DNA of 63,382 nt, counting the filler, from Dimorphilus gyrociliatus (taxonomy: Eukaryota > Animalia > Annelida): the NCBI GenBank assembly GCA_904063045.1. It is 3 parts of 3 records of this genome, joined end to end, with 100 filler letters (N's around TTAATTAATTAA, not from the genome) between each part and the next. Parts side by side here need not be neighbours in the genome. Positions count along the whole stretch, not along the records: positions 26,753 to 58,199 come from CAJFCJ010000133.1; 2 more parts are not named here. One strand, 5' to 3'. The notes below the pieces were generated by a model. That model had not been told where the DNA came from. It searched no databases and saw only the letters and a list, made by a program, of their open reading frames with translations. Positions 31,310 to 57,468 of the stretch are shown here, piece after piece; the first letter of the stretch is position 1, and every line of letters begins with the position of its first letter. The position numbers were made by a program, and so were the translations under genes.

Positions 31310-31990
31310 TTTATCCATTAGGATATGTAATTGGTGCGTAATAATATTTCCATCACCCATATTTGTATTGAAATTCAAATCTATGAAGTGGATATTGTCA
31401 CATTTTTTCAGAACACATGCAATATAAATACATTGCTCTTTAGTTAGATTGCAATCAGCAAATGCACACTTTGTCAGTGTTTTTGATGATTGTACAAGTA
31501 CATTACTAGATGAATGCTAACTTATCACCCATTTATTTACCACTTAAAATGATCTGTTCTAATTTTGATAAATTCAATAAAAAGTATCCCAATTCTTTAC
31601 ATTCTATAGCAGAAAAATTACAATATGCAAAATTAAGATATGTTAAACTGTTTAATTCTTTACATAATTGAATTAGTTTCTGTCTGTTATGTTATTAAAA
31701 ATCACATTAAATCTTTCTAAAAAATGTAATTATCTTATTTTAATGAGCTAATTGATTTCCATTGGGTAAAATGTATAAATTTACACCCACAAAAGATTAA
31801 ACTTCTTAAAGAGGTTGATGATTTTTTTAACCCTTGACAAATACTCAATAGTCCCTTTTTATTAATTTTTACATTTCTGCTCAAATCTACAGTTTCCAAA
31901 CTAGGAAAACTTTTCAATATTTTCCCAATTATTATTCATAGATTATCTGTTAACATTCACATTGATAAATTAATTTATTTTGTCTTTATA
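31310..31990 (-). pseudogene. Decayed RI-type LRR paralog of 34478-35845
   Basis: FPSLETVDLSRNVKINKKGLLSICQGLKKSS aligns with FPRLKIVNLSKNKEMGDNGVLSICQGLKKSS; several frame breaks. Confidence 0.8.
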
Positions 31991-33173: not shown

Positions 33174-34366
33174 CTAAGAATGATTTATATTCATACCAGT
33201 TGATATCGGAAATGCTTTTACTCTTGTCTCAGACAAAGGTAAAACATCTGATGTCTGCTGAACATCTCTCTTTCTTCTAGTAGTTACTTCAAATTGAACT
33301 TTCAAAAATCCATTTGGTTGTAATGTAAAGGGAAGAAAACTAAAAGGAATGGAGCTCATTGAGTTAATAGAATACTGATCAGATGGGGAAGACTTTCTCG
33401 ATTTTATGGTGATAGTATCAGCCAAACTGATATCTAGCCTATTTAGAGACTGGTTACTCTCCTCTATAAAGGGTTAGATTATATTGATGATTATATTGAT
33501 AGGCTTAAGATGATTAAATATCAACTTATGATCATACTTTGTTATTCGCTTTCAATGTAGTGTTTTAGTTTTAACTTTAGCTGACTCATTAATATTGTTA
33601 AGAGTATGAAAATTTAAACATTGGCAACAAGCTAAAAAAAAACCTTTGTCAATTATGCATTTCTATTGCTTTCAAAGTTGGTAATGTGATTGGTTTTTAT
33701 TGATTTAAATTTTACATCATTGAAAATTGGACCATTAACGCAAGAGTGAGTAAATGCCAATTGTCTTTTTGAATCTGAAAAGAAATTACAACTATCAGAT
33801 GGCAATGTTGTACATTTTTTAACTCAACTATCATCCGTATAGATGAACTTTTGCAATTCGTCTGTACTTCCACAATTTGAATTGTAGCAAGATAATGACT
33901 TGTATCCAATTCTTCTGTATACTGAATTTGTTGAAGAACCAACACCATAGGTACAATCACTGTTGCTAAGCATACATACCGTACTGTTTTATGTTATATT
34001 TTTTTTTCTTTTAATATATTGCTTAGGTCAACATGACTAGAATTTAATACAGTTTTTAATTTTTTATTTTTCAAATTCAAATAATCTTATTTCTTCATTT
34101 CTATCTAAACTAATTGTAATTTTGTTAAAAACATGCATCATTATACTTGAACAGTATAATTTTTTTTTGTTGAAATACAAGATTTTGCTTTCAGTCCATA
34201 ACAGAGAAGATAGGGTGAACATTCTAAAGCAGAGTTGAAGATATATTTTGTCAAAGAGCTGAGTAGTAGATAATTCTTCAATTTTTGTATTTATTCTACT
34301 TAATTTTTTGCAGAATATAGTATTGATCAAAAATATCACAATGAATATGGCAAATTGGTATGGCAA
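33174..34366 (-). other. Possible exons of an unidentified secreted protein
   Basis: Signal-like MPYQFAIFIVIFLINTIFC (34064-34366), a Cys-containing open stretch at ~33800-33960 and a TRRKRD furin-like site (33174-33425). No family recognised. Confidence 0.3.
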
Positions 34367-34477: not shown

Positions 34478-35845
34478 TTATTGCCTTTCTGCAAAACTCC
34501 AATCCAAGAAGTCATTGAGAAAATGAAACAGTCTAAACTCCAAAAGTGAACTCTCTTTATCCGTGGTCAAATAATTCAGCACCTTCTTGCATAGCATAGT
34601 TTTAATTTTTACTGATGGATCATCCATATCACCATCATCTCTAAAATCCATTTTGGTTATATAAGAACAAACTGATAACAGTAGGACTAAATATCTAGTT
34701 TGACTGTCAGATAAGAAACATCCATAACAGGAGACGGTTTGAAGAGTATTTTTTGATACTTCTAACCCATCACAAATATTTGCAAGTCCATCATCCATTT
34801 TTGCATTTAAAGACAAATTTATAGATTTTATGTTGGGACATTTGTTCAACAAATTTGCAATATAAATACATTGTTCTTTAGTTAGATTACAATCCATAAA
34901 AGATAAAATTCTTATTGAACTTGATGACTGTACAAGTGCATCACAGATGAATGCTAATTCATCACCCATTTCTTTATTACCAGTTAAATAGACTTCCTGT
35001 ATTTGTGATATATTCATTAAAAAATCTCCCAATACTTTACATTCCTTTGAAGACAAATTACAATATCCTAAATTAAGAGATAATAAAGTTTTTGAAGATG
35101 ATTTTAATGCATTACATATTGGAATCAACGCATTGTCTGTAAGGTTATTTCTACTCAAAATCAGTTCTTTTAAATAGCATAATTGTTCTAATAATGAGCT
35201 CATTGAATCCCATTGGTTGGAATTCAGAAAATTACATGCATTTAAATTTAAATTTCTTATATAATTTGATGATTTTTTTAAACCTTGACAAATGCTTAAT
35301 ACTCCATTATCGCCCATTTCTTTATTTTTACTCAAATTAACAATTTTCAATCTAGGAAAGTTTTCCAATATTTTCCCAATTTCTATCCATTCATTTTCAC
35401 TAAACAAACAATTTGATAAATTCAAATGTTTTAGATTATTTGATGATGGAATACGGCTATTCAAAATAATTATCAATCCATTCGCCATACCAGGATTACT
35501 ACTAAAATCAAATTTTTCTATTGAGGGATATTTTTCCAGTGAATCTGCAATCATTTTCCAAGATTTCTCATCTATTTCGCAATTTTTAAATTTTATACTT
35601 GTTATTGAAATTGACAATACTTTTAATCTTTTACATAAATAATAAAAATTTTCAGTTGTAAAATGAATAACATGTGTTAGAACAGCTGATTTGGATTCAT
35701 GAATTTCACACAATTTATTAATAAATGAAATATTCTCAATAGATCTATCTTCAATACCAAATTTAACATTAAAAAATTGATTTTTAGTTAATTGGTAAAT
35801 TTCTGAACAATTATTACAAGTAATATTATACTTGTCTCCAGGCAA
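34478..35845 (-). CDS. Ribonuclease-inhibitor-type LRR protein; N-terminus unclear
   Basis: 455-codon ORF of alternating 28/29-aa LRRs. Starts at TTG just after an in-frame TAA, with a MULE relic upstream. Confidence 0.8.
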   Translation of the reverse strand: MPGDKYNITCNNCSEIYQLTKNQFFNVKFGIEDRSIENISFINKLCEIHESKSAVLTHVIHFTTENFYYLCKRLKVLSISITSIKFKNCEIDEKSWKMIADSLEKYPSIEKFDFSSNPGMANGLIIILNSRIPSSNNLKHLNLSNCLFSENEWIEIGKILENFPRLKIVNLSKNKEMGDNGVLSICQGLKKSSNYIRNLNLNACNFLNSNQWDSMSSLLEQLCYLKELILSRNNLTDNALIPICNALKSSSKTLLSLNLGYCNLSSKECKVLGDFLMNISQIQEVYLTGNKEMGDELAFICDALVQSSSSIRILSFMDCNLTKEQCIYIANLLNKCPNIKSINLSLNAKMDDGLANICDGLEVSKNTLQTVSCYGCFLSDSQTRYLVLLLSVCSYITKMDFRDDGDMDDPSVKIKTMLCKKVLNYLTTDKESSLLEFRLFHFLNDFLDWSFAERQ

Positions 35846-36030: not shown

Positions 36031-36152
36031 ATTCTTGATTCTACTTATTATTTTACCAATTAAAACCTGTATGTGCACTAAAAGAATTAAAAAAAACAAA
36101 CACTTTTCAAGCTAGTAGTATTCAAATGTATTACATTTATTTTTTTAAATAT

Positions 36153-38159
36153 CTAAAATAATCTGATACATGTTACCAATGGGCTATTATTCAAATAATT
36201 CAACTGTTCCTCATTAAAATCACACCAAAATACTGAAATACATTCTAATGTATCTTTTGTATGGAGGAGTCCATCGCAAATTATTGAAAATCCATTTCCC
36301 ATATTTGTATTATTATCTAAACTTAATACTTTGATGTTTGAACAACATTTTAATAATTTTGCCCAACATTTACAACTTTCCTCATTTAAATCACAATCTG
36401 CAATAGAAATAAATTCTAAAGTCTTTTTAGAGTGAAGAAGTTGATCACAAATATCTGAAATTGAATTTGTCATATTTGGATTTCCAAATAAATCAATTTT
36501 TTTTATATTTTTACATTTTGACAATAAATTTACAAGATTTTTGCCATCATTTTCATTCAAATCACATCTGCCAATTGATATCACTTGTAATGCTTTTTTA
36601 GATACAATAAGACTATTGCAAATATCTGAAAAAACACTTTTAATTTCCAAATCTCCATACAAATATATCTCTTTTATTTTAGAGCAATTTTTCAACAATT
36701 CTGCCAAACATTTGCCTTTTTCCTCATTCAAATTACAATCTCCAATATCGATTTTCTCTAAACTTTTTTTGGAATAATTCAATGCATTCAAAACAGACAA
36801 AAGTGAATTCATAATTTTTGAATTTCCAAATAAATCTATTTCTCTTAAATTGGAACATTTTTCCAACAATTTTGCCAAATGTTTACCTTGTTCCTCATCC
36901 AAACAGCACAATCTAAGGGAAAGTTTTTCAAGAAGGCAATTTGTTTTAAGTAATTGAAGACAAATTTGGCAAAAACCATTTTCCATATTTGAATTCTCTT
37001 GAAAATTCAAATCCTTTATATTTGGACACAATTTCAAAGTGTTAGCCAACCATTGGCACATTCTATCATTCAAATATGAAGATTCAAAATTAAGTTTCTG
37101 TAAATTATTTTTAGACATAGTAAGCCCATTACAAATTTCAAAAAATCCATATCCCATTTTTTTATTCCATCCCAAATCTATATCTTTTATTTTTGTGCAT
37201 TTCATCAATAACTTTCCCAAAAATTTACACTGTTCCTCATACAAAAAACACTTATAGAAACTAATCTTCTCTAAAGTGTTGCTCGATTGATATAATACTT
37301 TAAAAATATCATGAAAACCATCAAAAACACTTGAATTGTATGATAAATCAATTGATTGGATGTCATTATGATTTTCTAAGATTTCAATGCAAGCTTTAGT
37401 TTCTTTTGATGAAGATATTTTTGATTGGAAATTTAAATGACTCATTTCCTTTTTTCTAGTTTTTAACTTTAGATTTCTATTTTCAATTGAGTATTTTACT
37501 TTAATTCTTTTTAACAATTTGAATCTTAAAGATAAATTTTCCATCTGATTTTCCAAAAAATTTAACATATCTTCATCATGTTCTTCTATGTTCTTTATTG
37601 AATCTATTAAAGAATTCTTTCTTTGTATTGAAATCTCTTCTATTTCTGTTCTAATATCTGTAAATGCTTTTTTAATTCTCTCAATGCAAACATTCTCAAT
37701 TCCATCAATTGTAGTCATTAAATTTTGACAATTTTCGTCATTCTTCATTAAGAGTTTATTAGTGAAATTTTCAGTTCTATTTTGACTTTTTATTGTTGTT
37801 ATTTCACATTCTAAATGATTCTCTTCAAAACATTCAGAACATAGATTTTTAATATTATGAGTTTTACAATAGAGAGACAATTCTTTTCCATGATTTTCGC
37901 AGATATTATCAACTATTTTCTGCTGGGAATGCTTTAAAAAATTCTTTTGCAGTCGCCAAATCTTTCCATCCGGAATTGTAGTTTCGTTTTTACATTTAGG
38001 GCACACAACTTTTGACTTGTTAATTGGTAAAATTTTTAGACATTTTAAACAAAAAGTATGTTGACATGAAAGTATCCTTGGATCTTTTTCTACCCAAGAT
38101 TTTAAACAAATACCACATTCAGTATTCTCTTGTCCAAAACCATATTCACCGGTAGCCAT
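36153..38159 (-). CDS. TRIM-like E3: RING - B-box - coiled coil - RI-type LRR array (668 aa, intronless, intact)
   Basis: C3HC4 RING CGIC...CQHTFCLKC...CPKC; B-box CENH...C..H...CSEC...H..C; E/K/L-rich helix; then about 14 alternating 29/28-aa LRRs. Confidence 0.92.
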   Translation of the reverse strand: MATGEYGFGQENTECGICLKSWVEKDPRILSCQHTFCLKCLKILPINKSKVVCPKCKNETTIPDGKIWRLQKNFLKHSQQKIVDNICENHGKELSLYCKTHNIKNLCSECFEENHLECEITTIKSQNRTENFTNKLLMKNDENCQNLMTTIDGIENVCIERIKKAFTDIRTEIEEISIQRKNSLIDSIKNIEEHDEDMLNFLENQMENLSLRFKLLKRIKVKYSIENRNLKLKTRKKEMSHLNFQSKISSSKETKACIEILENHNDIQSIDLSYNSSVFDGFHDIFKVLYQSSNTLEKISFYKCFLYEEQCKFLGKLLMKCTKIKDIDLGWNKKMGYGFFEICNGLTMSKNNLQKLNFESSYLNDRMCQWLANTLKLCPNIKDLNFQENSNMENGFCQICLQLLKTNCLLEKLSLRLCCLDEEQGKHLAKLLEKCSNLREIDLFGNSKIMNSLLSVLNALNYSKKSLEKIDIGDCNLNEEKGKCLAELLKNCSKIKEIYLYGDLEIKSVFSDICNSLIVSKKALQVISIGRCDLNENDGKNLVNLLSKCKNIKKIDLFGNPNMTNSISDICDQLLHSKKTLEFISIADCDLNEESCKCWAKLLKCCSNIKVLSLDNNTNMGNGFSIICDGLLHTKDTLECISVFWCDFNEEQLNYLNNSPLVTCIRLF

Positions 38160-38758
38160 TTTGAATTAGATACTCTTTATTGTCACAGTAACGCTGTAAC
38201 CCTAATGTTAATGGTGTGATCGATTTGTTTTGTATAAATCATAATTCAGCCTTCTATTGGCAATATTTAAATCATGTTGATGAATTATTAATGATTAGAG
38301 AATGCTATTTAACATTCTGTTTGGACTTGTCTATGACTGTTGGAGAAAACTAATAATTAGCATAATCTGAATCTAAATAATCTGGACAACCACATAACCA
38401 GTGGGTTTTTTTAGGGTTTTTATGGATGGGTTTGGGTAAATTTTACCCTTAGGATCCCAAACACCTCGTTTGTCCATGTTCCTCCTCTGCTAGAAATTTA
38501 CTCCCTCCAATAAAATGACAGCTGTGACTTTCTTATAAGAGGCCTATAGCCATTGCACTGGTAGACACTGGTAGACATTTATAATACAGATCAATATAGC
38601 TTTTTTGAGTAGTAAGAGTAGACCAATTAGAGTTTTTGCTTAACAAGTTCTGAAGGTTTAGAGGTCACAGAGGGCACGGATACTCTTAACTATTTTCAAG
38701 GACCTAGTAATTTTCCCGGCTCTTGAACAAATTGGTAAAGACCAACTAGGCATGAAAG

Positions 38759-38774: not shown

Positions 38775-39038
38775 GAATAAGTGTTGTAACTCATTAATAA
38801 TAAAAAGAATGAGAAATTAAACTGAAAATATTCTAGATGGAAAGTTGTTCCAGTTAAATATCACATGATCATAATTTTTCAATAACTTTTACACGAATTA
38901 TGTATTAAAATATCTATCATGATTGAAGAGTTAATCTTTCAGTTGAGAATATGAGTATGAACTGTAAAGTTATTTTTGTAGGTTTAAACATCATTTGAGG
39001 GAATCAGTATCCAAAACTGTAATCTCCAACAGACACAT

Positions 39039-41800
39039 ATGGATTCTTTTGCAAAATTAATATTCTATTGTTCTAATTTAGTGTACATAAATTTATCAGG
39101 AAATCCAAAGATACAGCAGTTACTATCAATAATCTTTGATGAATTACACCATTCTTCTAAAACATTAAAAAAGATTGAAGTCAGTAACTGTAGCATAACT
39201 ATTAAAGAAGGGCATTCACTGGGGAAATTACTTAAAAAGTGCTCACATATAACAGATATTGGCTTGGCATGGAATAAACATATGGGTGAATCATTTGAAG
39301 AAATACTTGATGGATTAGAAACATCATCAGATGTTTTGAAAAATGTTAATTTAAGCTGCTGCTGTTTAAATGAAACAAATGGAAAATCTTTGGGAAAAAT
39401 GTTAAAAAAATGCCCATCTATAACAGAGATTAAGTTGGCAGCAAATAAAAATATTGGTGAATCATTTCAAGAAGTTCTTCAAGGCTTAGGCTCATCTTCA
39501 AAGATATTGGACACCAATGATTTCAGTTACTGTTTTTTGAATGAAGAATATGTGAAATCTCTTGGAGAGTTACTTAAAAACTGTTCACATATAAAGTATA
39601 TTGACTTAAAAGGTAATAAAAACATGGGAAACTCATTCAATTTTGTATCTCAAGCATTGGCTTCATCATCAGAGACCTTGCAAAAGATTCTTCTCCAAAC
39701 ATTTAACTTAAATGTAGAGCAAGGGCTATTTCTAGCAAAGTTAATCAAAAAGTGCTTCCTTATAACAGATGTTAATCTTGTAAGAAATACTAATATAGGT
39801 AAATCATTTACAGAAATATTTGAAGGATTGGAATCATCTTCAGATATTTTGGAAAATATTTTTGTTGGAAGGTGTAAATTTAATGGAGAAGAAAGAAAAT
39901 CCTTAGGAATATTATTTAAGAATTTTGCTAAAGAAGGAGCATTGAATTTGAAATATAAAGATCATTTTTTTAAACATAATGAATTACTTTTAATAAAAAG
40001 TTTAGACCTGTAAATCCTGATAATTCTGAATGGGAATACATCTTCTTAGATGAAACTAATGGAACTTTGACTATTAGAAAGAGTTTGTCTGGAATTATTA
40101 AATGAAGAACAAGGAAAGTCTTTGGGAAAACTTCTTAAAAAGTGTTCTAGCATGAGAGAAGTGAATTTGAAATACTGCATAACAATGGTATGGGTAAATC
40201 TTCTACAGAAATATTCGAAGGTTTAGAATCATCTTCAAAGAGTATGGGAAAAAACGTCCTTGGGAAAAAACGTCCCTGGGAAAAAACGTCCCAGGGTGGG
40301 AAAAAATGTCCCAGTGTGGGAAAAAACGTCCCAAGGTTAGGAAAAAATGTCCCAAGGTTGGGAAAAACAAGTAGTGGGAAAAGATATTTGAATTTTAAAA
40401 AAGATTGCTCTATTTTGGGAACCAATGGCAATATACTGAGAATATAATAATTAATAATGAATATATGTTTATTAAAATGTATTAAAAATGAAAAAAGCTA
40501 AGAATGTTATACAAAGTTTAAAACTTACTAGAATAAAGTATAAAGTATGTTAAGACACTGAGAATTATTTTGAATAGATTAATGCAATCTTCTGCAAGAG
40601 GACATCCCAAACAGCAAATACTTGCTTCTGCTTCTGGATGACACTTTTCTTCTGATACTTCTTTAGCCTTTTTTCTGATAGAAGTTTCTCTACAACTGGA
40701 ATAAGACTTGATTCCTGTTTTAAAATATCTATGAGCATATAAAATGACCCTTTTGCAGGAGTCTTTTCATTATTCTTCTGTGCCATCCTTCAACATCATT
40801 GTTGGTCCTGATGGCAAGACCAAATACAGACCAACAATTTGGTGTCCAAATTGAATGCTTAATCCAAGTACTTTCAATGTATTGGAAAAAATCCAAAAAT
40901 TCATTTCTCTCAAAGGCCTCATCTTTTAGCATGTAGAAACTGTTTAGAATGGCTTCATCTGGAAGAAAAGGTAATGCCAAAACTTGTTTCAGCAGTCCTG
41001 CCTTCTTCTTTTCCATATTATATTGTTGTGTGTATCCCAAATTCTACAATAATTTAATAAAAACATATAAAGAGACAGACCTTTGATGCATTTGGCATGG
41101 ACATAATCTTGGCAGTCATTGCATTTCATCTTTCTCTGTCTGCCATAAAATCTTTTATTACAATTAATACAAACAGGTGCCATTACTAAGTTTCTGCAAA
41201 AATAAATTCACTTTCAACTATCAAATATGGCTGCCTATACAAAAATTATAAATAATAACTCACTGGAAAGAAGTGTTCTTAAACAATGTATAATCTTGTA
41301 ATATTCAATAAACTAAATCAATACCAGAGTTTCAATGCTTAAAAAACAAATTAGCCTGAAAATATGCCAAGAAATGCAAAATTTATCTTTCACTTACAGG
41401 CAAGACAAGGAAATAACTCATTTCTCTTTTAATAGCATTACATAATTCAGAGAAAACTGGTAAAAACATCACAATACATATCCCTTTCTTCAAAAATATT
41501 AATATTTTATTCTATAAATGAAATAAACAGCAAAGAGAAAAACATTTCTGATTATAAGTATAAATAATTATGCCAAGTATATCTTTAGCCAGGCATAGGA
41601 CGTTTTTTCCCAACAATTAGGACGTTTTTTCCCGCCCTGGGACGTTTTTTCCCAGGGACGTTTTTTCCCAAGGACGTTTTTTCCCGACCCCATCTTCAAA
41701 TACTTTAGAAGAGATTGATGTTGTGGGTTGTATATTAAATTAAGAACAAGAAAAGTTTATGAGAACATTATTTAAACAGTATTCCAATACAAAAATGTAA
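39039..41800 (+). pseudogene. RI-type LRR paralog interrupted by a MULE
   Basis: 324-aa open LRR stretch (39039-40013), then breaks. Removing the MULE restores GLESSS-NTLEEIDVVGCILN. Confidence 0.85.
40240..41691 (-). mobile_element. Non-autonomous Mutator element with a 9-bp TSD
   Basis: TSD ATCTTCAAA at 40231-40239 and 41692-41700. Termini G-N5-GGGAAAAAACGTCC with 5-6 subterminal repeats. PHD finger (CINC...CNDC...HAKC) joined to the transposase C-terminus; catalytic core deleted. Confidence 0.95.
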
Positions 41801-50143: not shown

Positions 50144-52549
50144 GAGGCCAGGACATTTGGGCCTAGGACATTTCGGCCCACTTTTTGGACATTTCGGCCC
50201 AGGACATTTTGGCCCACTTTAGGACATTTTGGCCCATTTTAGAGCATTAATATTCAAGAATATAACTTTCCATTTTATGATGGATTATGTTTATTTTTTC
50301 AATAAGAAAGGAAACAATTTCAAAACAGTAAAAGAATGATATAACATACAATAACAAAAATGCAGAGTAAGAAATGTTAACTTTTAAAAAATATTTAAAT
50401 ATACAAGTCCATCCAATAATTCATCCAAACTCAGTTCTCTTTCTTCAAATTTACTCCACAACTGAAATAGTTTGAATTGTAAATCTTGATACTTCTTCTT
50501 TTGTATCTTTCTTAACTTTTTCTCAGACAATAACTTTTCAAAGATCTCTACTAACTCAGCTTCTCTTCTTAATTCTTTTATGAGGGAATACAAGTTCTCA
50601 TCCATGTTCAAGTTTTTGTTAAGCCTGGAATGCCATGCCTCAACATGATTGTTTGTTCTCACAGCCAATTGATAGACAGACCAGAATTTAGGAGGCCAAA
50701 TGCTGCTTTTAATAAATGTTTCTTCAATATAATCAAGCAAATCTGAAAAGAATTTCTTTTCACAAAGTTCTTCTTTTATTTGAAAAAACTTTTGTTCAAT
50801 AAATTTTGCTGGAAGATAGGCCAAACACATCAATTTTTGTAACATTTTCCCTTTATATTCATTTTCTTTATAATCATTAATGTATCCAAGTTTCTAACAA
50901 AAAATTTTCTATGAATATTTAATTGTTTGCAGTATTGTTTAATCTACCTGAATGTTTCTCAAAATTGCTTGCTTGAAATGAAAAGAGCATCCTTGAAGGT
51001 CAGAATTAGGAAACTGGTCTTTAAGTGCCATCCATATAGCCTTTTCAAAATCAAGAACACATTTCCTGGGTGTTTTATCATTCAGTAATTTTCTTATCTC
51101 CTGTGTTCATTTATAAGGAGTTAAATTAAAAGTGAATATCATATTGAAAAATTTCAAACCTGAAGAACAGCAATATAGCAGTTTTTCTTTTTGCTACTCA
51201 TCAGAACATAAATCAATGGAACCTGCTGATATTCATCATGTTTTTTCAAGAATCCATGAATTGAAAAGAGTTGATAAAATGGATCTCTAACAACTTTAAA
51301 AGTTGCATCAATGAACCAAATTTTACAACATTCAAGTAATTCTATTTGATGATTTGTACCAAATATAATACATTGATTTTTCTTTTCTTTTATATCTTTC
51401 AATAAGAAATCCATTGGAATTTCATCTAGATTTATTTCAAAGTGTAAATATCTAGGATGCTTTGGTCTTCTATTCTCTTTATATCTGGAAGCTTTTCTTC
51501 TTAGTGATTCTAATTCTGGTAAGTCTTCAATATTATCTTTAAATTTAAGAATAATATCTTCTGCTATTCTTTTACCAGTTTTGTCATTGTCACAATTTGC
51601 CATTTCTTTCAAATCCATTCTTGATTGAAGAACATTTTCCAGATTTTTATACAACTTATGAAGATGGTTTCCATTTTTTACAATGAAATTTGATCCTTTT
51701 TGTATTATGTATGCAGGACAAGGATTTTTAGCATATCTTTGAGTACATCTCCAGGTAATTGAACTCTCAGTTTTTCTTTTCATGGAATATGAACAATTTT
51801 TGTGTAGAAGTAAGTCTTTACCTTTGGTACTTCCACCAACAACAATTTTGAATTCATCTCTTTCAGTTTCCATAATGTTACACTGCTCATCCATCTCAAA
51901 TGAAGTTTCATCACTGATGTCAACTTTCATATCTCTCATATCTTGCCTATTATCAGGAAGATTCACCTCTTTTTCAATATTTGATGATTCAGTTGAATTA
52001 AAGTCAAAAGAGAGTCTCAGCTGTCAAAAATAATTTAGAGTGAGATATTAATATTTTTTAAGCATTGAAATTACCTGATTTGTGTTGCTTTCACTTGCAT
52101 AATCCATTGAAGATTCCATATCAATATCACTTTCTTGAAGAATTTCACTCTGATGATAATTATCTATTTTCTTCAATTTAATAAATAATTGTCTTCTCCT
52201 GACATCATGACAATCAGAGCAATAATCTGTATCTTAATATATAAATGATATAGCATTAAACATTGGAAAGTTTAATAGAATACACTTACTTTTTGAACAT
52301 TTTGCATGATAAAAATGTCTGCACAACTTGCATCTGAATTTTCTTTGAGTCCAGTGGAACCTCAATCCACACTTCCAACAATTTTTCAAATTCATGCTGT
52401 GGTTTCTATCAAAACTAGGATAAAATGCAAGAAAACAAATATACCCTCTACTTTTTTCACAACAGGAAAAGGAAATTGCAAAAAATAGTAAAATATACTT
52501 TTGAAAAAAGAAAACTGGTAATATGAAAATGTTTCAAATTTTTTGAATC

Positions 52550-52716: not shown

Positions 52717-55700
52717 TGGGTTTTGCCAGTGCTTCCAACTGGAATTTGATTTAAACATGTCTGAATTTCCAAATTCTTTCTTTCTACCATTCCATTACTT
52801 TGGCTATGGAATGCTGTTGTTTTAATTTTTCGTATTCCATTGATGTCACCATTTCTGTAAAGATTTCCCAAGAAAATTCCTTCCTTGATCTGTGAGAATT
52901 TCTTCTGGGATACCAAATATTGGGAAATAGTTGAAAAACAAATGTTTAGAAATCTCCTCAGCTGTTTGAGTTTTTAGAGGGAATATGTTGTTAAATCTGG
53001 ACATGTGGTCTATAATGACAAGTATATACTTGTAAGAATCATGTCCAGTCAGAGGTCCCATTATGTCCATAGCAATTCTTTGCATTGGAAGTGTTGGATG
53101 GGGTGTTTCCACCAGTAGATGTTTGTTTCCAGGTGCTCTCAATTGTTCACAGAATTCACAATTTCTAATATGTTCTTTGATTGTTTTCTTCAGTTGTGGA
53201 TGCCAAAAGGCTTGTTCCAATGTATGGATTGTTATGTCAACACCATAGTGTTCAAATAATTGATGTTGATGAATTTGTCCCAGTAGGCTTGTTAAAGTTG
53301 CCAATGGGATTACAAGTAGTGGTTGGCAACCATTCAAATACCATACCAGATCCTCTTTGACAAACATATGTTCAATAAAATTCTTATAATCCTTGACTGT
53401 TTCAACATCAATGTCTTCTCCTTCCAATTTATCTACAACTTTCATTAGTGTATCATCCATTATTTGTTCTGTGTAGAAATTTATCTCAACTGCTTTATTT
53501 TTCAATTTCATGACCTGTATTTGTTTTCATCTACTTGTAAGAATCATGTCCAGTCAGAGGTCCATTATGTCCATAGCTATTCTTTGCATTGGTAAAGTTG
53601 GGTGAGGTGTTTCAACCAACAGATGTTTGTTGCCTGGTGCTCTTAATTGCTCACAAAATTCACAACTCTTTATGTGATCTTTAATTGTTTTCTTTAGCTT
53701 GGGGTGCCAGAAAGCTTGCTCCAAAGTGTGAATTGTTATGTCTACACCATAGTGCTCAAATAGTTGATGTTGATGAATTTGTCCAAGTAAGTTGGTTAGA
53801 GTTGATAGTGGAATTACAAGTAGTGGTTGACAGCCATTTAGATACCATACAAGATCTTCTTTTACAAACATAGATTCAATAAAGTTTCCATATTCATTCA
53901 AAGACCCATTATCAATGTTTTCTCCTTCCAATTTGTCTACAACTTTCATTAGTGGAGTATCTAATACTTGCTCTCTATAGAAGTTTATTTCAACTGGTGT
54001 GATTTTTAGTTTCATAATCTGGGCTTGGATTTCAGTTATGTCTTCATCATAATCATTGTCTAGATTGTCATCTAAACAATCACTAATTCTTCTAAGTCCT
54101 CTGTATCAATATAAAAGCATTTAAGCATATCCTTTCTTTCTGCTAATTGGGGAACTGTATTGCCATTTTGTTTTTCTTCATTTAATCTTTCCTTAAGTAA
54201 ATTACGAAAATCAATTACTTCATCAGTTTCACCAATTCTTGATATCTAGTCTGCTCTATTAGTTCTTCCTGGTATGTATATTATTTCAAAATCCATATCC
54301 ATAAGTGCCATCACCCATTTAACAGTACTTGTATTCAGTTTGTTTTGTACAAATGTTTGTACCAAATTTTGGTGATCAGTGTAGAGAAAAAATTTCTTAT
54401 ACTGTAGATAATGGGAGAATTTTTGTACTGCCAATATACTGCAAAAGCCTCTTTTTGATAAGCTGCATATCTTAGTTGTGTATTGATTAGGAGCTTGGAA
54501 GCAAAAGATTGGTTTTCTTATTTTCTTTCCATCTTCTTCCCATTCTTGTTCTAGAACTGCACCAACTGCATAATTAGAAGCATCTGTTGTTAAATAGAAT
54601 GATTTAGTAAAGTCTGGCAGTTGAAGGATTGGGGGCTCTGTCATTGCATTCCTTAGTGTTTCATAAGCTTCCTCTGCTTTTTTTGTCCATTTCAGTTTTT
54701 CTGTCTTTTGGTGTACTTTTAATAATTCTCTCAAAGGTTTTGTGATTTTTGCAAAATCTTTAACAAATCTTCTATAATAACCACAAAATGCCACAAAACT
54801 CAACAGAGTATTTGCAAACATAGGTAATTTGGCATCTTTTATTTTCTGAATCTTTTCAGGATCAGTTTCAATACCATTCTGTGTAATTCTATGACCAAGG
54901 AATTGAACTGATTCTTGTAAGAATGCACATTTGCTCAGTTTAATTCTAAAGTCTTTTTCCTTGATTCTTTCCATAAGTTTCTGTAGAGCTACAAAGTGTT
55001 CTTCCAATGTTTTGGTAAAAACTATAATATCATCCATATAATTAATGCAGAAGTTTTCCAATCCATTAATAACAAAATTTGCCATGATATAGCTGAAGTG
55101 TGAAGGTGCATTTGCCAAACCAAATGGCATGCGGTTGAATTCAAATAAACCAAATGGCGTAATAAAAGCAGTTTTCTCCTTATCTTCTTCTTTGATTGGA
55201 ATATGATGAAATTCACTTGTTAAATCCAATATAGAAAAATATTTGTGGCCTCCTCCAAGCTTATCAAATAAATCTTCTGATGTGGGATTGGATAAAATTC
55301 TTTTTCGATTGCTTGTTAAGTTTTCTGTAATCCACACACTTCTTAATGTTCCTTCTTTCTTTTTCACAAAAACAATGGGTGAAGCCCATTGGCTTTTGCT
55401 TACTGTAATTAGACCATTTTCCAATAATCCATTTAATTGATCCTGCATTCCTGCTGTTTGTTGGGTGGCAATCTGTATGGTCTTTGTTTGAAAGGCTTTA
55501 TATCTTCCAATAATTCAATTGCCATTAGTGGAACATCTGGTGAACCAATGTCATTCTGATTTGTAGCAATAATATCTTCATAATTCTTTATCATTTCTTT
55601 TATTTCTTCTCTGTTCTTGTCAAGATTATTTTTGGACACATGTAAATAATTGTCAATTTCTAGTGTATTTGAATTAATATTGTGTACATTTTGATTAGAC

Positions 55701-55851
55701 AAATGTTCAAATTCAATACTTTCCAACTATAATTCTTCTATTTCAGGAGTTACTGGATTTTTCTTTTGTTCTTTTTCCACTTTGATAGTTATTCCATCTT
55801 CTAATTCAATGTATTGTGGTTTCATTTCCATTTCCATAGCTAAGTCTTCAG

Positions 55852-56140
55852 TTTCTTCTTCAGATGAATTTATGAGAATAACTGAGTCATTGTCAGACTT
55901 AGGTATATTTCCAGTCTCTTCATCAGATGAGTCTATAACCATTATGGAATCATTGTCAGACTCAATTGTGTTACTGGTCTCTTCTTCAGATGAATCTATA
56001 ACAATCATTGAATCATTATCAGGCTCAGTTATGTTATCAAGCTCTTCTTCAGATGAGTCTATAACAATCATTGAACCATTATCAGAATTAGTTGAATCAC
56101 TAATTTTATCTTCAGATGAGCTTGTACCATTGATTATATC
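55852..56140 (-). repeat. 63-bp (21-aa) coding tandem repeat, 4 good units + 1 degenerate
   Basis: CAGATGA recurs at 55861, 55924, 55987, 56050, 56113; unit SMIVIDSSEEELDNITEPDND. Confidence 0.92.
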
Positions 56141-57468
56141 CAAATCTGAGTCTGGACTGTGATCTGATTCAATACTTGTTTCTGTATCATAATTTTCAGA
56201 AGTACTGGAACTTCATCTGTGCCATAATTGCTATTTGAATCAAAACCATTGAATCCCTCATAAACTATGCTTGAACCATGAGTGTTGCTTGTATCATAGC
56301 CAGTATCTGGATCAGTAACTTCCATTTCTGAGTCCACACTATCTGAAATTCAGATGGAGTATCAAAAACTTCAGATGGAGTGTCAGAATCTTCAAAATAC
56401 TGTCCCATCATTCCAACAGTTACTTTTTTTACACTGCCTTGTTTTCCAAATTTTGTCTGGTGATTTTCTTTATATTGCAAAAACTTTCTAACTGGTTGTT
56501 CTTTTCTGATAAAGAATGGAAAGAAACTTGTTTTGTTGCAAAATCAATAAGACTCCAGCATTTTGTAGGAAATCATAACCAAGTATTATAGCCATATCTA
56601 GTTTTTCCATAATAAAGAATTCTTGTTCCATAATTCTTCCATTAAATTGAATATTCAGTTTTGCTTTTCCTTTTGTCTTTAAAGCATTTCCATCTGCTGA
56701 AGTGATGATTGGTAAGCCAGTGGTTTCTTTCTTGATGAATTTAGAATCCATTAACCTGATTTCTTTTTCTGTAATAAATGACAAAAGTGCTTCTGAATCA
56801 CATAAAGCAATAACCTCTCTTCCATTATGATTTTTCATTCGAAATTGGAAATCTTTTCTGCTTTTACCAAAGAAGTACACCTAAAATGTGTGATTTTCTC
56901 TTCTTTGAGATTAAATATTGCCATTCTTCCTTTAGAAATTTCAGTTTCATTAGGTTCATCAGGTTCAACATGTATTAGTCTGTTAAAGCTGCCTTTTTCA
57001 TTATTTCCTGCATTTCCATTTCTTTGTTGTTGAAATCTATTTTGAGAAAAAGGTTTAAATGTATGTTCATTTTGATTTGAGTTACTCTGATTGTTGTCAA
57101 ATCTCCTTTTGTACTGTTTGAATTCATTTTCGCTTTCCTTTCTTGCATTATCAAAAATATGTCTGCTCTTTTTGCCAATTTAATATACTGATTAACTGAG
57201 TTAATCTTTCCATCTTTTTCCACATGATTAACAATTTTTCCTTTAAGACCATTCCTGAATACAGTTAACAGTTGAAGTTCTCTAACTCTTTCAGAAACAC
57301 AAGCCATTTCAGTAGTATTGAATGGTAGGAATTTTTCCACAAGTTCTTTACTTCTTCTAACAAAACTTTGGACAGTTTCATCATTGAACTATCTCAATCT
57401 ATCAATTTCTTTTTTGATGACTATATTGATTTTTTGTCAAAACTGAGAGTTCAATTTTTCACAAACAA

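Follow-up and report, generated by a model that had tools for sequence, protein, structure and literature searches.

Intracellular innate immunity has two large families built of modules, the TRIM proteins and the NLRs. Exchange of modules between them has been described for fish NLR-B30.2 proteins and for pyrin (PMC4852459). The known exchanges are one-way, in that the TRIM sensor B30.2 was put onto fish NLRs and into pyrin; the converse would be a TRIM chassis that carries an NLR-type leucine-rich repeat (LRR) array. We describe a candidate for such an arrangement in a 63,382-nucleotide (nt) stretch of DNA from the dinophilid annelid Dimorphilus gyrociliatus, a minute marine worm (assembly GCA_904063045.1), which we refer to as the window. 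The gene in question encodes a protein of 668 amino acids (aa) in which a RING, a B-box-like zinc finger and a predicted coiled coil (together RBCC) are followed by LRRs of the ribonuclease inhibitor (RI) type.

The N-terminal part of this protein resembles TRIMs in the order and spacing of its elements (a RING, about 30 aa, a B-box2-like finger and, directly after it, the predicted coiled coil) and in being followed by a C-terminal recognition module. In TRIMs this module is usually PRY-SPRY or NHL, whereas the window protein ends in an RI-type LRR horseshoe. Its RING comes closest to those of TRIM2 and TRIM3 (TRIM-NHL proteins) and TRIM23, and TRIM5alpha and TRIM21 are the nearest for the working principle. 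The word 'LRR' or 'leucine' does not occur in the survey of TRIM origins by Marin (PMC3503706), in agreement with the initial annotation of the gene, which knew of no LRR class in the standard TRIM scheme. Likewise, the literature that we searched contained no description of a RING-B-box-coiled-coil-LRR architecture or of a 'TRIM-LRR'.

Among NLRs, the closest proteins are the NACHT-LRR proteins of D. gyrociliatus itself and vertebrate NLRP3, NLRP5, NLRP12 and NLRP14. They have the same LRR subtype with alternating 28 and 29 residues, provide the top sequence and fold matches, and also form divergent multigene families. Unlike them, the window protein has no NACHT, NB-ARC or death-fold domain (for NACHT and NB-ARC, no Pfam match even at E up to 10), and any oligomerization would use the coiled coil and the RING instead of an ATPase. 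The nearest named architecture is that of two proteins of the fish Polypterus senegalus, P0200 ('NLRP3-like') and P0252 ('TRI25 ligase'), with the order RING-B-box-TRIM_CC-NACHT(-LRR). In P0200 the order RING, B-box, TRIM_CC, NACHT, LRR was verified, which places RBCC and LRR in one polypeptide. These proteins appear to be a vertebrate TRIM-NLR fusion, and we found no discussion of them in the literature searched. They differ from the window protein in the NACHT between RBCC and LRR and in a vertebrate class-IV-like RBCC that is well recognised by Pfam, and there is no sign that they share descent with the annelid family.

LRRs are also the recognition modules of other ubiquitin ligases (E3), as in the F-box/LRR receptors of the FBXL type (the fold matches of the window protein include FBXL2), in LRSAM1 and in the bacterial IpaH/SspH NEL ligases. 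These ligases differ from the window protein in domain order and in their catalytic module. LRSAM1 consists of an N-terminal LRR, a SAM domain and a C-terminal RING; in the window protein the order is reversed, with the RING first, and F-box, SAM and NEL domains have no Pfam match in it. By structure as well as by sequence, aa 241-668 match ribonuclease inhibitor best, which has about 15 repeats, but it is a stand-alone LRR protein, and nothing in the window protein suggests binding of an RNase.

According to the genome paper, the D. gyrociliatus genome has 73.8 Mb and a reduced gene repertoire with nine expanded families, which are mostly locally duplicated immune-type genes (PMC7854359). In the available portions of its text and supplements, RBCC-LRR genes are not named and a list of the families is not given.

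The RBCC-LRR gene and its product

The gene is located on the minus strand (Table 1). The DNA around it has ~25% GC, in which a random codon would be a stop in roughly 1/12 of cases. From this composition we estimated the probability of a 668-codon open frame as ~1e-25; the open frame cannot be a product of chance. The in-frame TAA in front of the ATG makes an upstream extension of the frame impossible without splicing. At the other end, the C-terminus '...VTCIRLF' stops at the same repeat-unit position as in three homologues in the alignment. Because of the upstream TAA, the AATAAA signal and this homologue-matched C-terminus, we conclude that the gene is complete in one exon and is not an exon running into an intron. 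A possible intron at GTAAC near the 3' end was rejected, since the homologues have their C-termini at this very position of the repeat and the stop codon is followed by AATAAA. The intact open reading frame (ORF) of the initial annotation was thus recovered with both its boundaries. The exact 668-aa protein was absent from the protein collections and the gene-position index that we searched.

Table 1. Features of the RBCC-LRR locus, in positions along the window
Feature	Position	Strand	Basis or remark
Complete single-exon coding sequence, 668 aa	36153..38159	-	Stop codon 36153-36155; ATG start; no interruption
C3HC4 RING, aa 15-56	37992..38117	-	Pfam, PDB match to TRIM2 RING, family alignment
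B-box2-like zinc finger C-H-C-H-C-C-H-C, aa 87-118	37806..37901	-	Ligand pattern, collinear TRIM alignments; below Pfam threshold
Predicted coiled-coil region, aa 124-207: long helix 124-189 and second helix 196-207	37539..37790	-	AlphaFold2
15 RI/NLRP-type LRRs, aa 241-668, alternating 29/28 residues	36156..37439	-	Register, AlphaFold2, RI matches
In-frame TAA, 9 nt 5' of ATG	38166..38168	-	Sequence reading
AATAAA polyadenylation signal, 12 nt 3' of stop codon	36136..36141	-	Sequence reading
Transcript-like unit	36116..38218	- (taken from ORF; contigs strandless)	Error-free contigs of X2, X3, X4
Tandem LRR-only paralogue, 455 codons, directly downstream	34478..35845	-	No ATG start; stop where P0005 has half-RING; no error-free X2-X4 contig listed
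Divergently oriented LRR-only paralogue	38991..40187	+	ORF 39039-40013; similarity continues past stop
Fragmentary LRR paralogue	31349..31983	-	Similarity

We looked up a 5.9-kb stretch around the gene in public sequencing runs and aligned the run contigs to it. Run X1 (2020, possibly DNA, 96% of words) covers the whole stretch, and the assembly was probably made from it. X3 and X4 belong to the same study as X1, and X2 (2017) comes from a second study with a second organism label. Error-free contigs of X2, X3 and X4 cover a transcript-like span that consists of the ORF, 59 nt upstream and 37 nt downstream, and its X3 end at 36116 lies 20 nt past the AATAAA. In the flanks of this span there was no error-free X2, X3 or X4 contig among the contigs listed. 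The junction between coiled coil and LRR (~37394) is bridged by contigs of all three runs (X2:36208-37557, X3:37027-37612, X4:36853-37473). This coverage pattern is as expected of transcriptome assemblies and speaks against separate RBCC and LRR transcripts, although it is suggestive only. The gene is apparently expressed, and the fusion of RBCC and LRR that had been annotated lies in one exon and one transcript-like unit.

The annotated RING is present with all its eight zinc ligands (C15 C18 C32 H34 C37 C40 C53 C56), which are invariant across 20 family members in the alignment. Matches to several Pfam RING models are weak (E 1e-5 to 2e-4), and zf-C3HC4 is the sole one above its cut-off (21.7 bits vs cut-off 21). 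In a single-sequence search of the PDB the best matches were the RINGs of TRIM2 (E 4e-11), TRIM23 and TRIM3 (to E 2e-8). I17 and P54 occupy positions that we take to be E2-contacting, E2 being the ubiquitin-conjugating enzyme. When the RING was aligned with that of TRIM2, K57 came to lie on the TRIM2 linchpin Arg, and the stretch after the RING ('LQKNF', or 'LQ(K/N)NF') was common to both. K57 is invariant in the four closest family members. In active RINGs a basic His, Lys or Arg at the linchpin position is the rule (PMC11992055), and the residues of the window RING seem compatible with E3 activity.

The second zinc finger follows the pattern C87-x2-H90-x7-C98-x2-H101-x5-C107-x2-C110-x4-H115-x2-C118, which is at least 90% conserved in the 20-member alignment. 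HMMER gave collinear alignments to the RING-B-box of TRIM21 (8-113) and to TRIM72 (11-157), both of which enclose this region. The annotated B-box has its ligand pattern and its collinearity with these two TRIMs in its favour and the Pfam zf-B_box model against it (see below), and we treat it as a divergent, candidate B-box2-like zinc finger.

A coiled coil directly after the B-box was predicted by AlphaFold2 at the place where the initial annotation had it, in a model that was built on a 4-sequence alignment. When we folded two copies of aa 1-250 as a homodimer, the score was 0.47, compared with 0.00 for the best of three controls. In the calibration, 21 of 30 proteins whose solved structures are one-chain pairs attained the dimer mark, as against 0 of 23 single-chain structures. 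For eukaryotes the figure was 17 of 29 (7 of 16 for animals), but it fell to 1 of 7 where no older solved relative exists. Contact agreement between runs was at least 37% and partner confidence (predicted local distance difference test, pLDDT) at least 64. The predicted contacts (155-166, 151-169, 147-173 and 140-181) describe an antiparallel pairing through residues 129-191 with the dyad near residue 160. Such an antiparallel coiled-coil homodimer is the TRIM arrangement; the prediction supports a likeness to TRIMs and is not a proof of binding. A Pfam match of COG5_N on the coiled coil was rejected as spurious.

From aa 241 onwards the protein keeps an exact register of 57 aa (29+28) over 7.5 double units with zero indels, and the AlphaFold2 model has 15 strand-helix units with a pLDDT of 85-97. 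The strict 29/28 alternation noted earlier therefore holds, while the count changes from about 14 to 15 repeats. With the family profile the best match was ribonuclease inhibitor (E 1e-55), followed by NLRP5, NLRP14, NLRP3, NLRP9 and NLRP1. In a Foldseek search the top match of the LRR model was bovine ribonuclease inhibitor (template modelling score 0.77, normalised to target). The structure prediction that had been proposed as a check thus gives an RI/NLRP-type horseshoe. Tandem Repeats Finder found no 171-nt DNA repeat in the LRR region, from which it follows that the LRR units are old and not homogenised. Between the repeats, positions x7, x8 and x10 differ most and x3 and x5 are fairly conserved, which agrees with the variation of the LRR face described in the initial annotation.

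Relatives in D. gyrociliatus and in public sequencing runs

A word-based search found three full-length relatives with 30-35% identity (P0002-P0004), all of them from D. gyrociliatus and annotated 'unnamed protein product / RING-type domain-containing protein'. These were joined by one LRR-only protein and then by fish NLRP3/12-like LRRs. The same search restricted to aa 1-255 returned three weak TRIM matches and missed the family itself, and when the family profile was compared with a starfish TRIM-NHL protein by hhalign, the RING was the only part that aligned.

We then used a profile of the RBCC and three LRR pairs for an exhaustive search, which resulted in 13,400 matches (205 at E <1e-30). 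The best 150 of these 13,400 matches contained about 30 representatives (at least 30; clusters at 50% identity) that are collinear from the RING into the LRRs and have the RING and B-box ligand patterns. Twenty representatives were traced to their sources: five are from D. gyrociliatus (P0032, P0036, P0040, P0050, P0073), and 15 occur in Logan assemblies only. The Logan members include runs SRR23372216/28/29/31 and ERR14224704. Together with P0002-P0004, the five proteins make up eight named family members, all from D. gyrociliatus, that are deposited in NCBI/UniProt as 'RING-type domain-containing'.

Identity within the family is 25-35%. In a maximum-likelihood tree of the RBCC, most of the branching order was left unresolved and branches were very long (median for terminal branches, 1.09 changes per site); this tree cannot tell whether the D. 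gyrociliatus members and those of the Logan runs form separate clades. As far as can be judged from the sequences, the family is very divergent, fast-diverging and locally duplicated, and the paralogue count suggested earlier bears out that the gene belongs to a large family. So far it is lineage-restricted, with members in D. gyrociliatus and in the Logan sequencing runs. At the Logan locus L002 (24% GC), which has no repeats in common with the window, the RBCC-LRR gene is again a single exon beside another LRR gene. The fact that these genes were kept and multiplied in a 73.8-Mb genome with a reduced gene repertoire suggests that they are under selection.

Several proteins from the Logan runs SRR233722xx (P0042, P0043, P0048, P0049, P0031, P0044, P0174) form an RBCC-LRR subfamily of ~1150-1190 aa, nearly twice the length of the window protein. 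A Pfam scan of P0048 and P0031 revealed no further domain, and the extra length presumably consists of more LRRs. P0048 is encoded by a single exon.

The LRR subtype of the family is also present on NACHT-LRR proteins, namely P0030, P0053, P0061 and P0072 of D. gyrociliatus and P0033 of a Logan run, which are among the best LRR-only matches. In this lineage the subtype thus occurs on NACHT, on RBCC or alone, which is a signature of module shuffling; the sequences suggest that NLRs and TRIMs exchanged domains. The occurrence on NACHT-LRR proteins of the same species fits the earlier idea that RBCC stands in the place of NACHT and lends it partial support.

The initial annotation had put the gene forward as a candidate for a new system. 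We did not find this to be the case: eight paralogues are already in NCBI/UniProt, although unnamed, locally duplicated immune-type expansions are reported in the genome paper, and RBCC-NACHT-LRR hybrids exist in one fish, P. senegalus. RBCC-LRR is a new C-terminal variant among TRIMs, not a categorically new system. As far as we searched, the architecture has no description, and its members stand in public protein sets without a name. It would extend the TRIM scheme by one C-terminal class.

A different combination was seen in the ESM Atlas, where three metagenomic clusters (63-102 members, 555-589 aa) have zf-B_box together with LRR_4/LRR_8. Their LRR class is different and no RING is listed for them; they may represent an independent architecture, possibly of protists.

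Possible function and competing explanations

We consider it reasonably probable that the window gene encodes a TRIM-type E3 ligase with an LRR horseshoe and has a role in immunity. The immune role is favoured because of the size of the family, its divergence, the local duplication with decayed copies and an LRR that is common to NLRs. Two chains are predicted to pair via the antiparallel coiled coil (aa 129-191), with one RING/B-box at each end. The LRR horseshoes would bind a protein or another ligand, as suggested by the way in which TRIMs, RI and the LRRs of NLRs work. Dimers on a multivalent target might then bring the RINGs together, and the charged E2 (E2~ubiquitin) would transfer its ubiquitin to either the target or the ligase. 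The most likely role of the protein would be cytosolic innate-immune recognition or restriction, with RBCC replacing NACHT as the output module.

A more far-reaching proposal is that the RBCC-LRR proteins are true cytosolic pattern-recognition receptors, in which NLR-type LRR sensing would be coupled to RING clustering and ubiquitination as the output, with no NACHT oligomerization. We regard this as a tentative possibility that is open to doubt. If true, animal innate immunity would have an independent branch of the 'sense-and-ubiquitinate' kind that works with a single chain and in which the NLR output module was swapped for a TRIM chassis. The family would also offer a compact, single-exon and NACHT-free model for the question whether an RI-type LRR alone can direct a ubiquitin ligase to a target. 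Before a ligand or a pattern of induction has been established, it is of limited practical value.

Several observations weigh against an immune TRIM ligase. At the level of domain recognition, the window protein has no match to Pfam zf-B_box (weak matches in two of 20 relatives, E ~1e-3), to the Pfam TRIM coiled coil (PF25600) or to any Pfam LRR model. RING and B-box were modelled poorly by AlphaFold2 (pLDDT <55). The predicted helix of ~66 residues is shorter than classical TRIM coiled coils, and the model may owe the dimer score to TRIM structures that it had memorised. No run is recorded as RNA, and expression is read from the pattern of contig coverage, which shows neither strand nor transcript ends. 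Both flanking LRR paralogues are without RBCC and look silent or decayed. The fold matches include non-immune RI-type LRRs, namely NLRP5 and NLRP14 (oocyte lattices), CARMIL, FBXL2 and axonemal proteins. Finally, diversifying selection was not evident among the paralogues: concave-face positions were no more variable than other exposed positions (2.66 vs 2.64 bits, p 0.44). A subset chosen post hoc (x7/x8/x10) was slightly more variable (p 0.008), and an analysis of the ratio of non-synonymous to synonymous substitution rates (dN/dS) was not feasible at 25-35% identity.

The last two of these points, the fold matches and the lack of excess variability on the concave face, would be expected if the protein were a substrate-receptor E3 for endogenous proteins with a non-immune function in turnover or scaffolding, comparable with FBXL in SCF or with NLRP5/NLRP14 in the cytoplasmic lattices of oocytes. 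The RING also points in this direction, since it is closest to TRIM2/3, which are not known as immune TRIMs. However, a large family with 25-35% identity, locally duplicated and accompanied by decayed copies, is a pattern more typical of conflict genes, and the LRR subtype is shared with the NACHT-LRR genes of D. gyrociliatus. We therefore consider an endogenous-substrate E3 unlikely, although it is the strongest competitor of the immune ligase.

It is also conceivable that the protein is a pseudoligase, a decoy or a regulator of NLR signalling that pairs with NLRs or competes for their ligands or partners, with a RING that tags NLRs or is idle. Its LRR subtype is that of the D. gyrociliatus NACHT-LRR proteins, and the position of P54 is not conserved in paralogues (CCLC in P0002, CFTC in P0004). 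Moreover, several human TRIMs that bear a RING are inactive pseudoligases (PMC11992055). The window copy, however, keeps all zinc ligands, I17, P54 and, at the linchpin, the basic K57 that the four closest members have without exception, which makes this explanation improbable.

A non-functional chimera or assembly artefact, such as two genes, one for RBCC and one for LRRs, joined by accident, or a copy in decay, might be suspected in a short, transposon-rich piece with decayed LRR copies and for a protein whose exact sequence is missing from the protein collections, but it is highly improbable in view of the 668-codon open frame in AT-rich DNA, the more than 30 collinear relatives (some independently assembled), the contigs of four runs from two studies that are error-free across the junction, and the conserved functional residues.

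Neighbouring copies and other features of the window

Besides the RBCC-LRR gene, the window contains three further LRR copies (Table 1) and shows local duplication and decay of LRR copies. The downstream neighbour at 34478-35845 has 54% protein identity and 75% DNA identity with P0005 of D. gyrociliatus (locus L001, 8001-9368), and the GC content and dispersed repeats around the gene resemble those of L001. This points to an unannotated scaffold of D. gyrociliatus, or of a species very close to it, as the origin of the piece. The fragment at 31349-31983 is probably a pseudogene. P0005 starts with 'MGCGAS...' and has the second half of a RING only (C-x-H-x2-C-x2-C ... C-x2-C). Its start resembles what we take to be an N-myristoylation/palmitoylation motif, and the RBCC-LRR family may include members with a truncated RING that are possibly membrane-anchored.

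Between positions 34300 and 40200 of the window, run X1 has many pieces that are 90-99% alike to the LRR region, as well as joints that skip 366-1599 nt between repeat units. These pieces and joints indicate close paralogues, alleles or assembly collapse.

Remains of a Ty3/gypsy-type long terminal repeat retrotransposon with broken ORFs are located on the minus strand at 52846-57340. They comprise an aspartyl protease, reverse transcriptase with RNase H (54246-55448) and an integrase in two pieces (52846-53511, 53554-54015), and the region has a strongly negative AT skew. A 270-aa ORF with a FLYWCH zinc finger was found at 51154-51966, also on the minus strand. FLYWCH is present together with a MULE transposase domain in the middle of the NACHT-LRR protein P0030, where it is either a transposon-derived insertion in an NLR gene or the result of a wrong gene model.

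Just beyond the plus-strand LRR gene, a 16-bp tandem repeat (TGGGAAAAAACGTCCC) is present in 3.2 copies (40245-40296). Long contigs of other runs agree to ~95% with positions 39998-40140, which are therefore a dispersed repeat.

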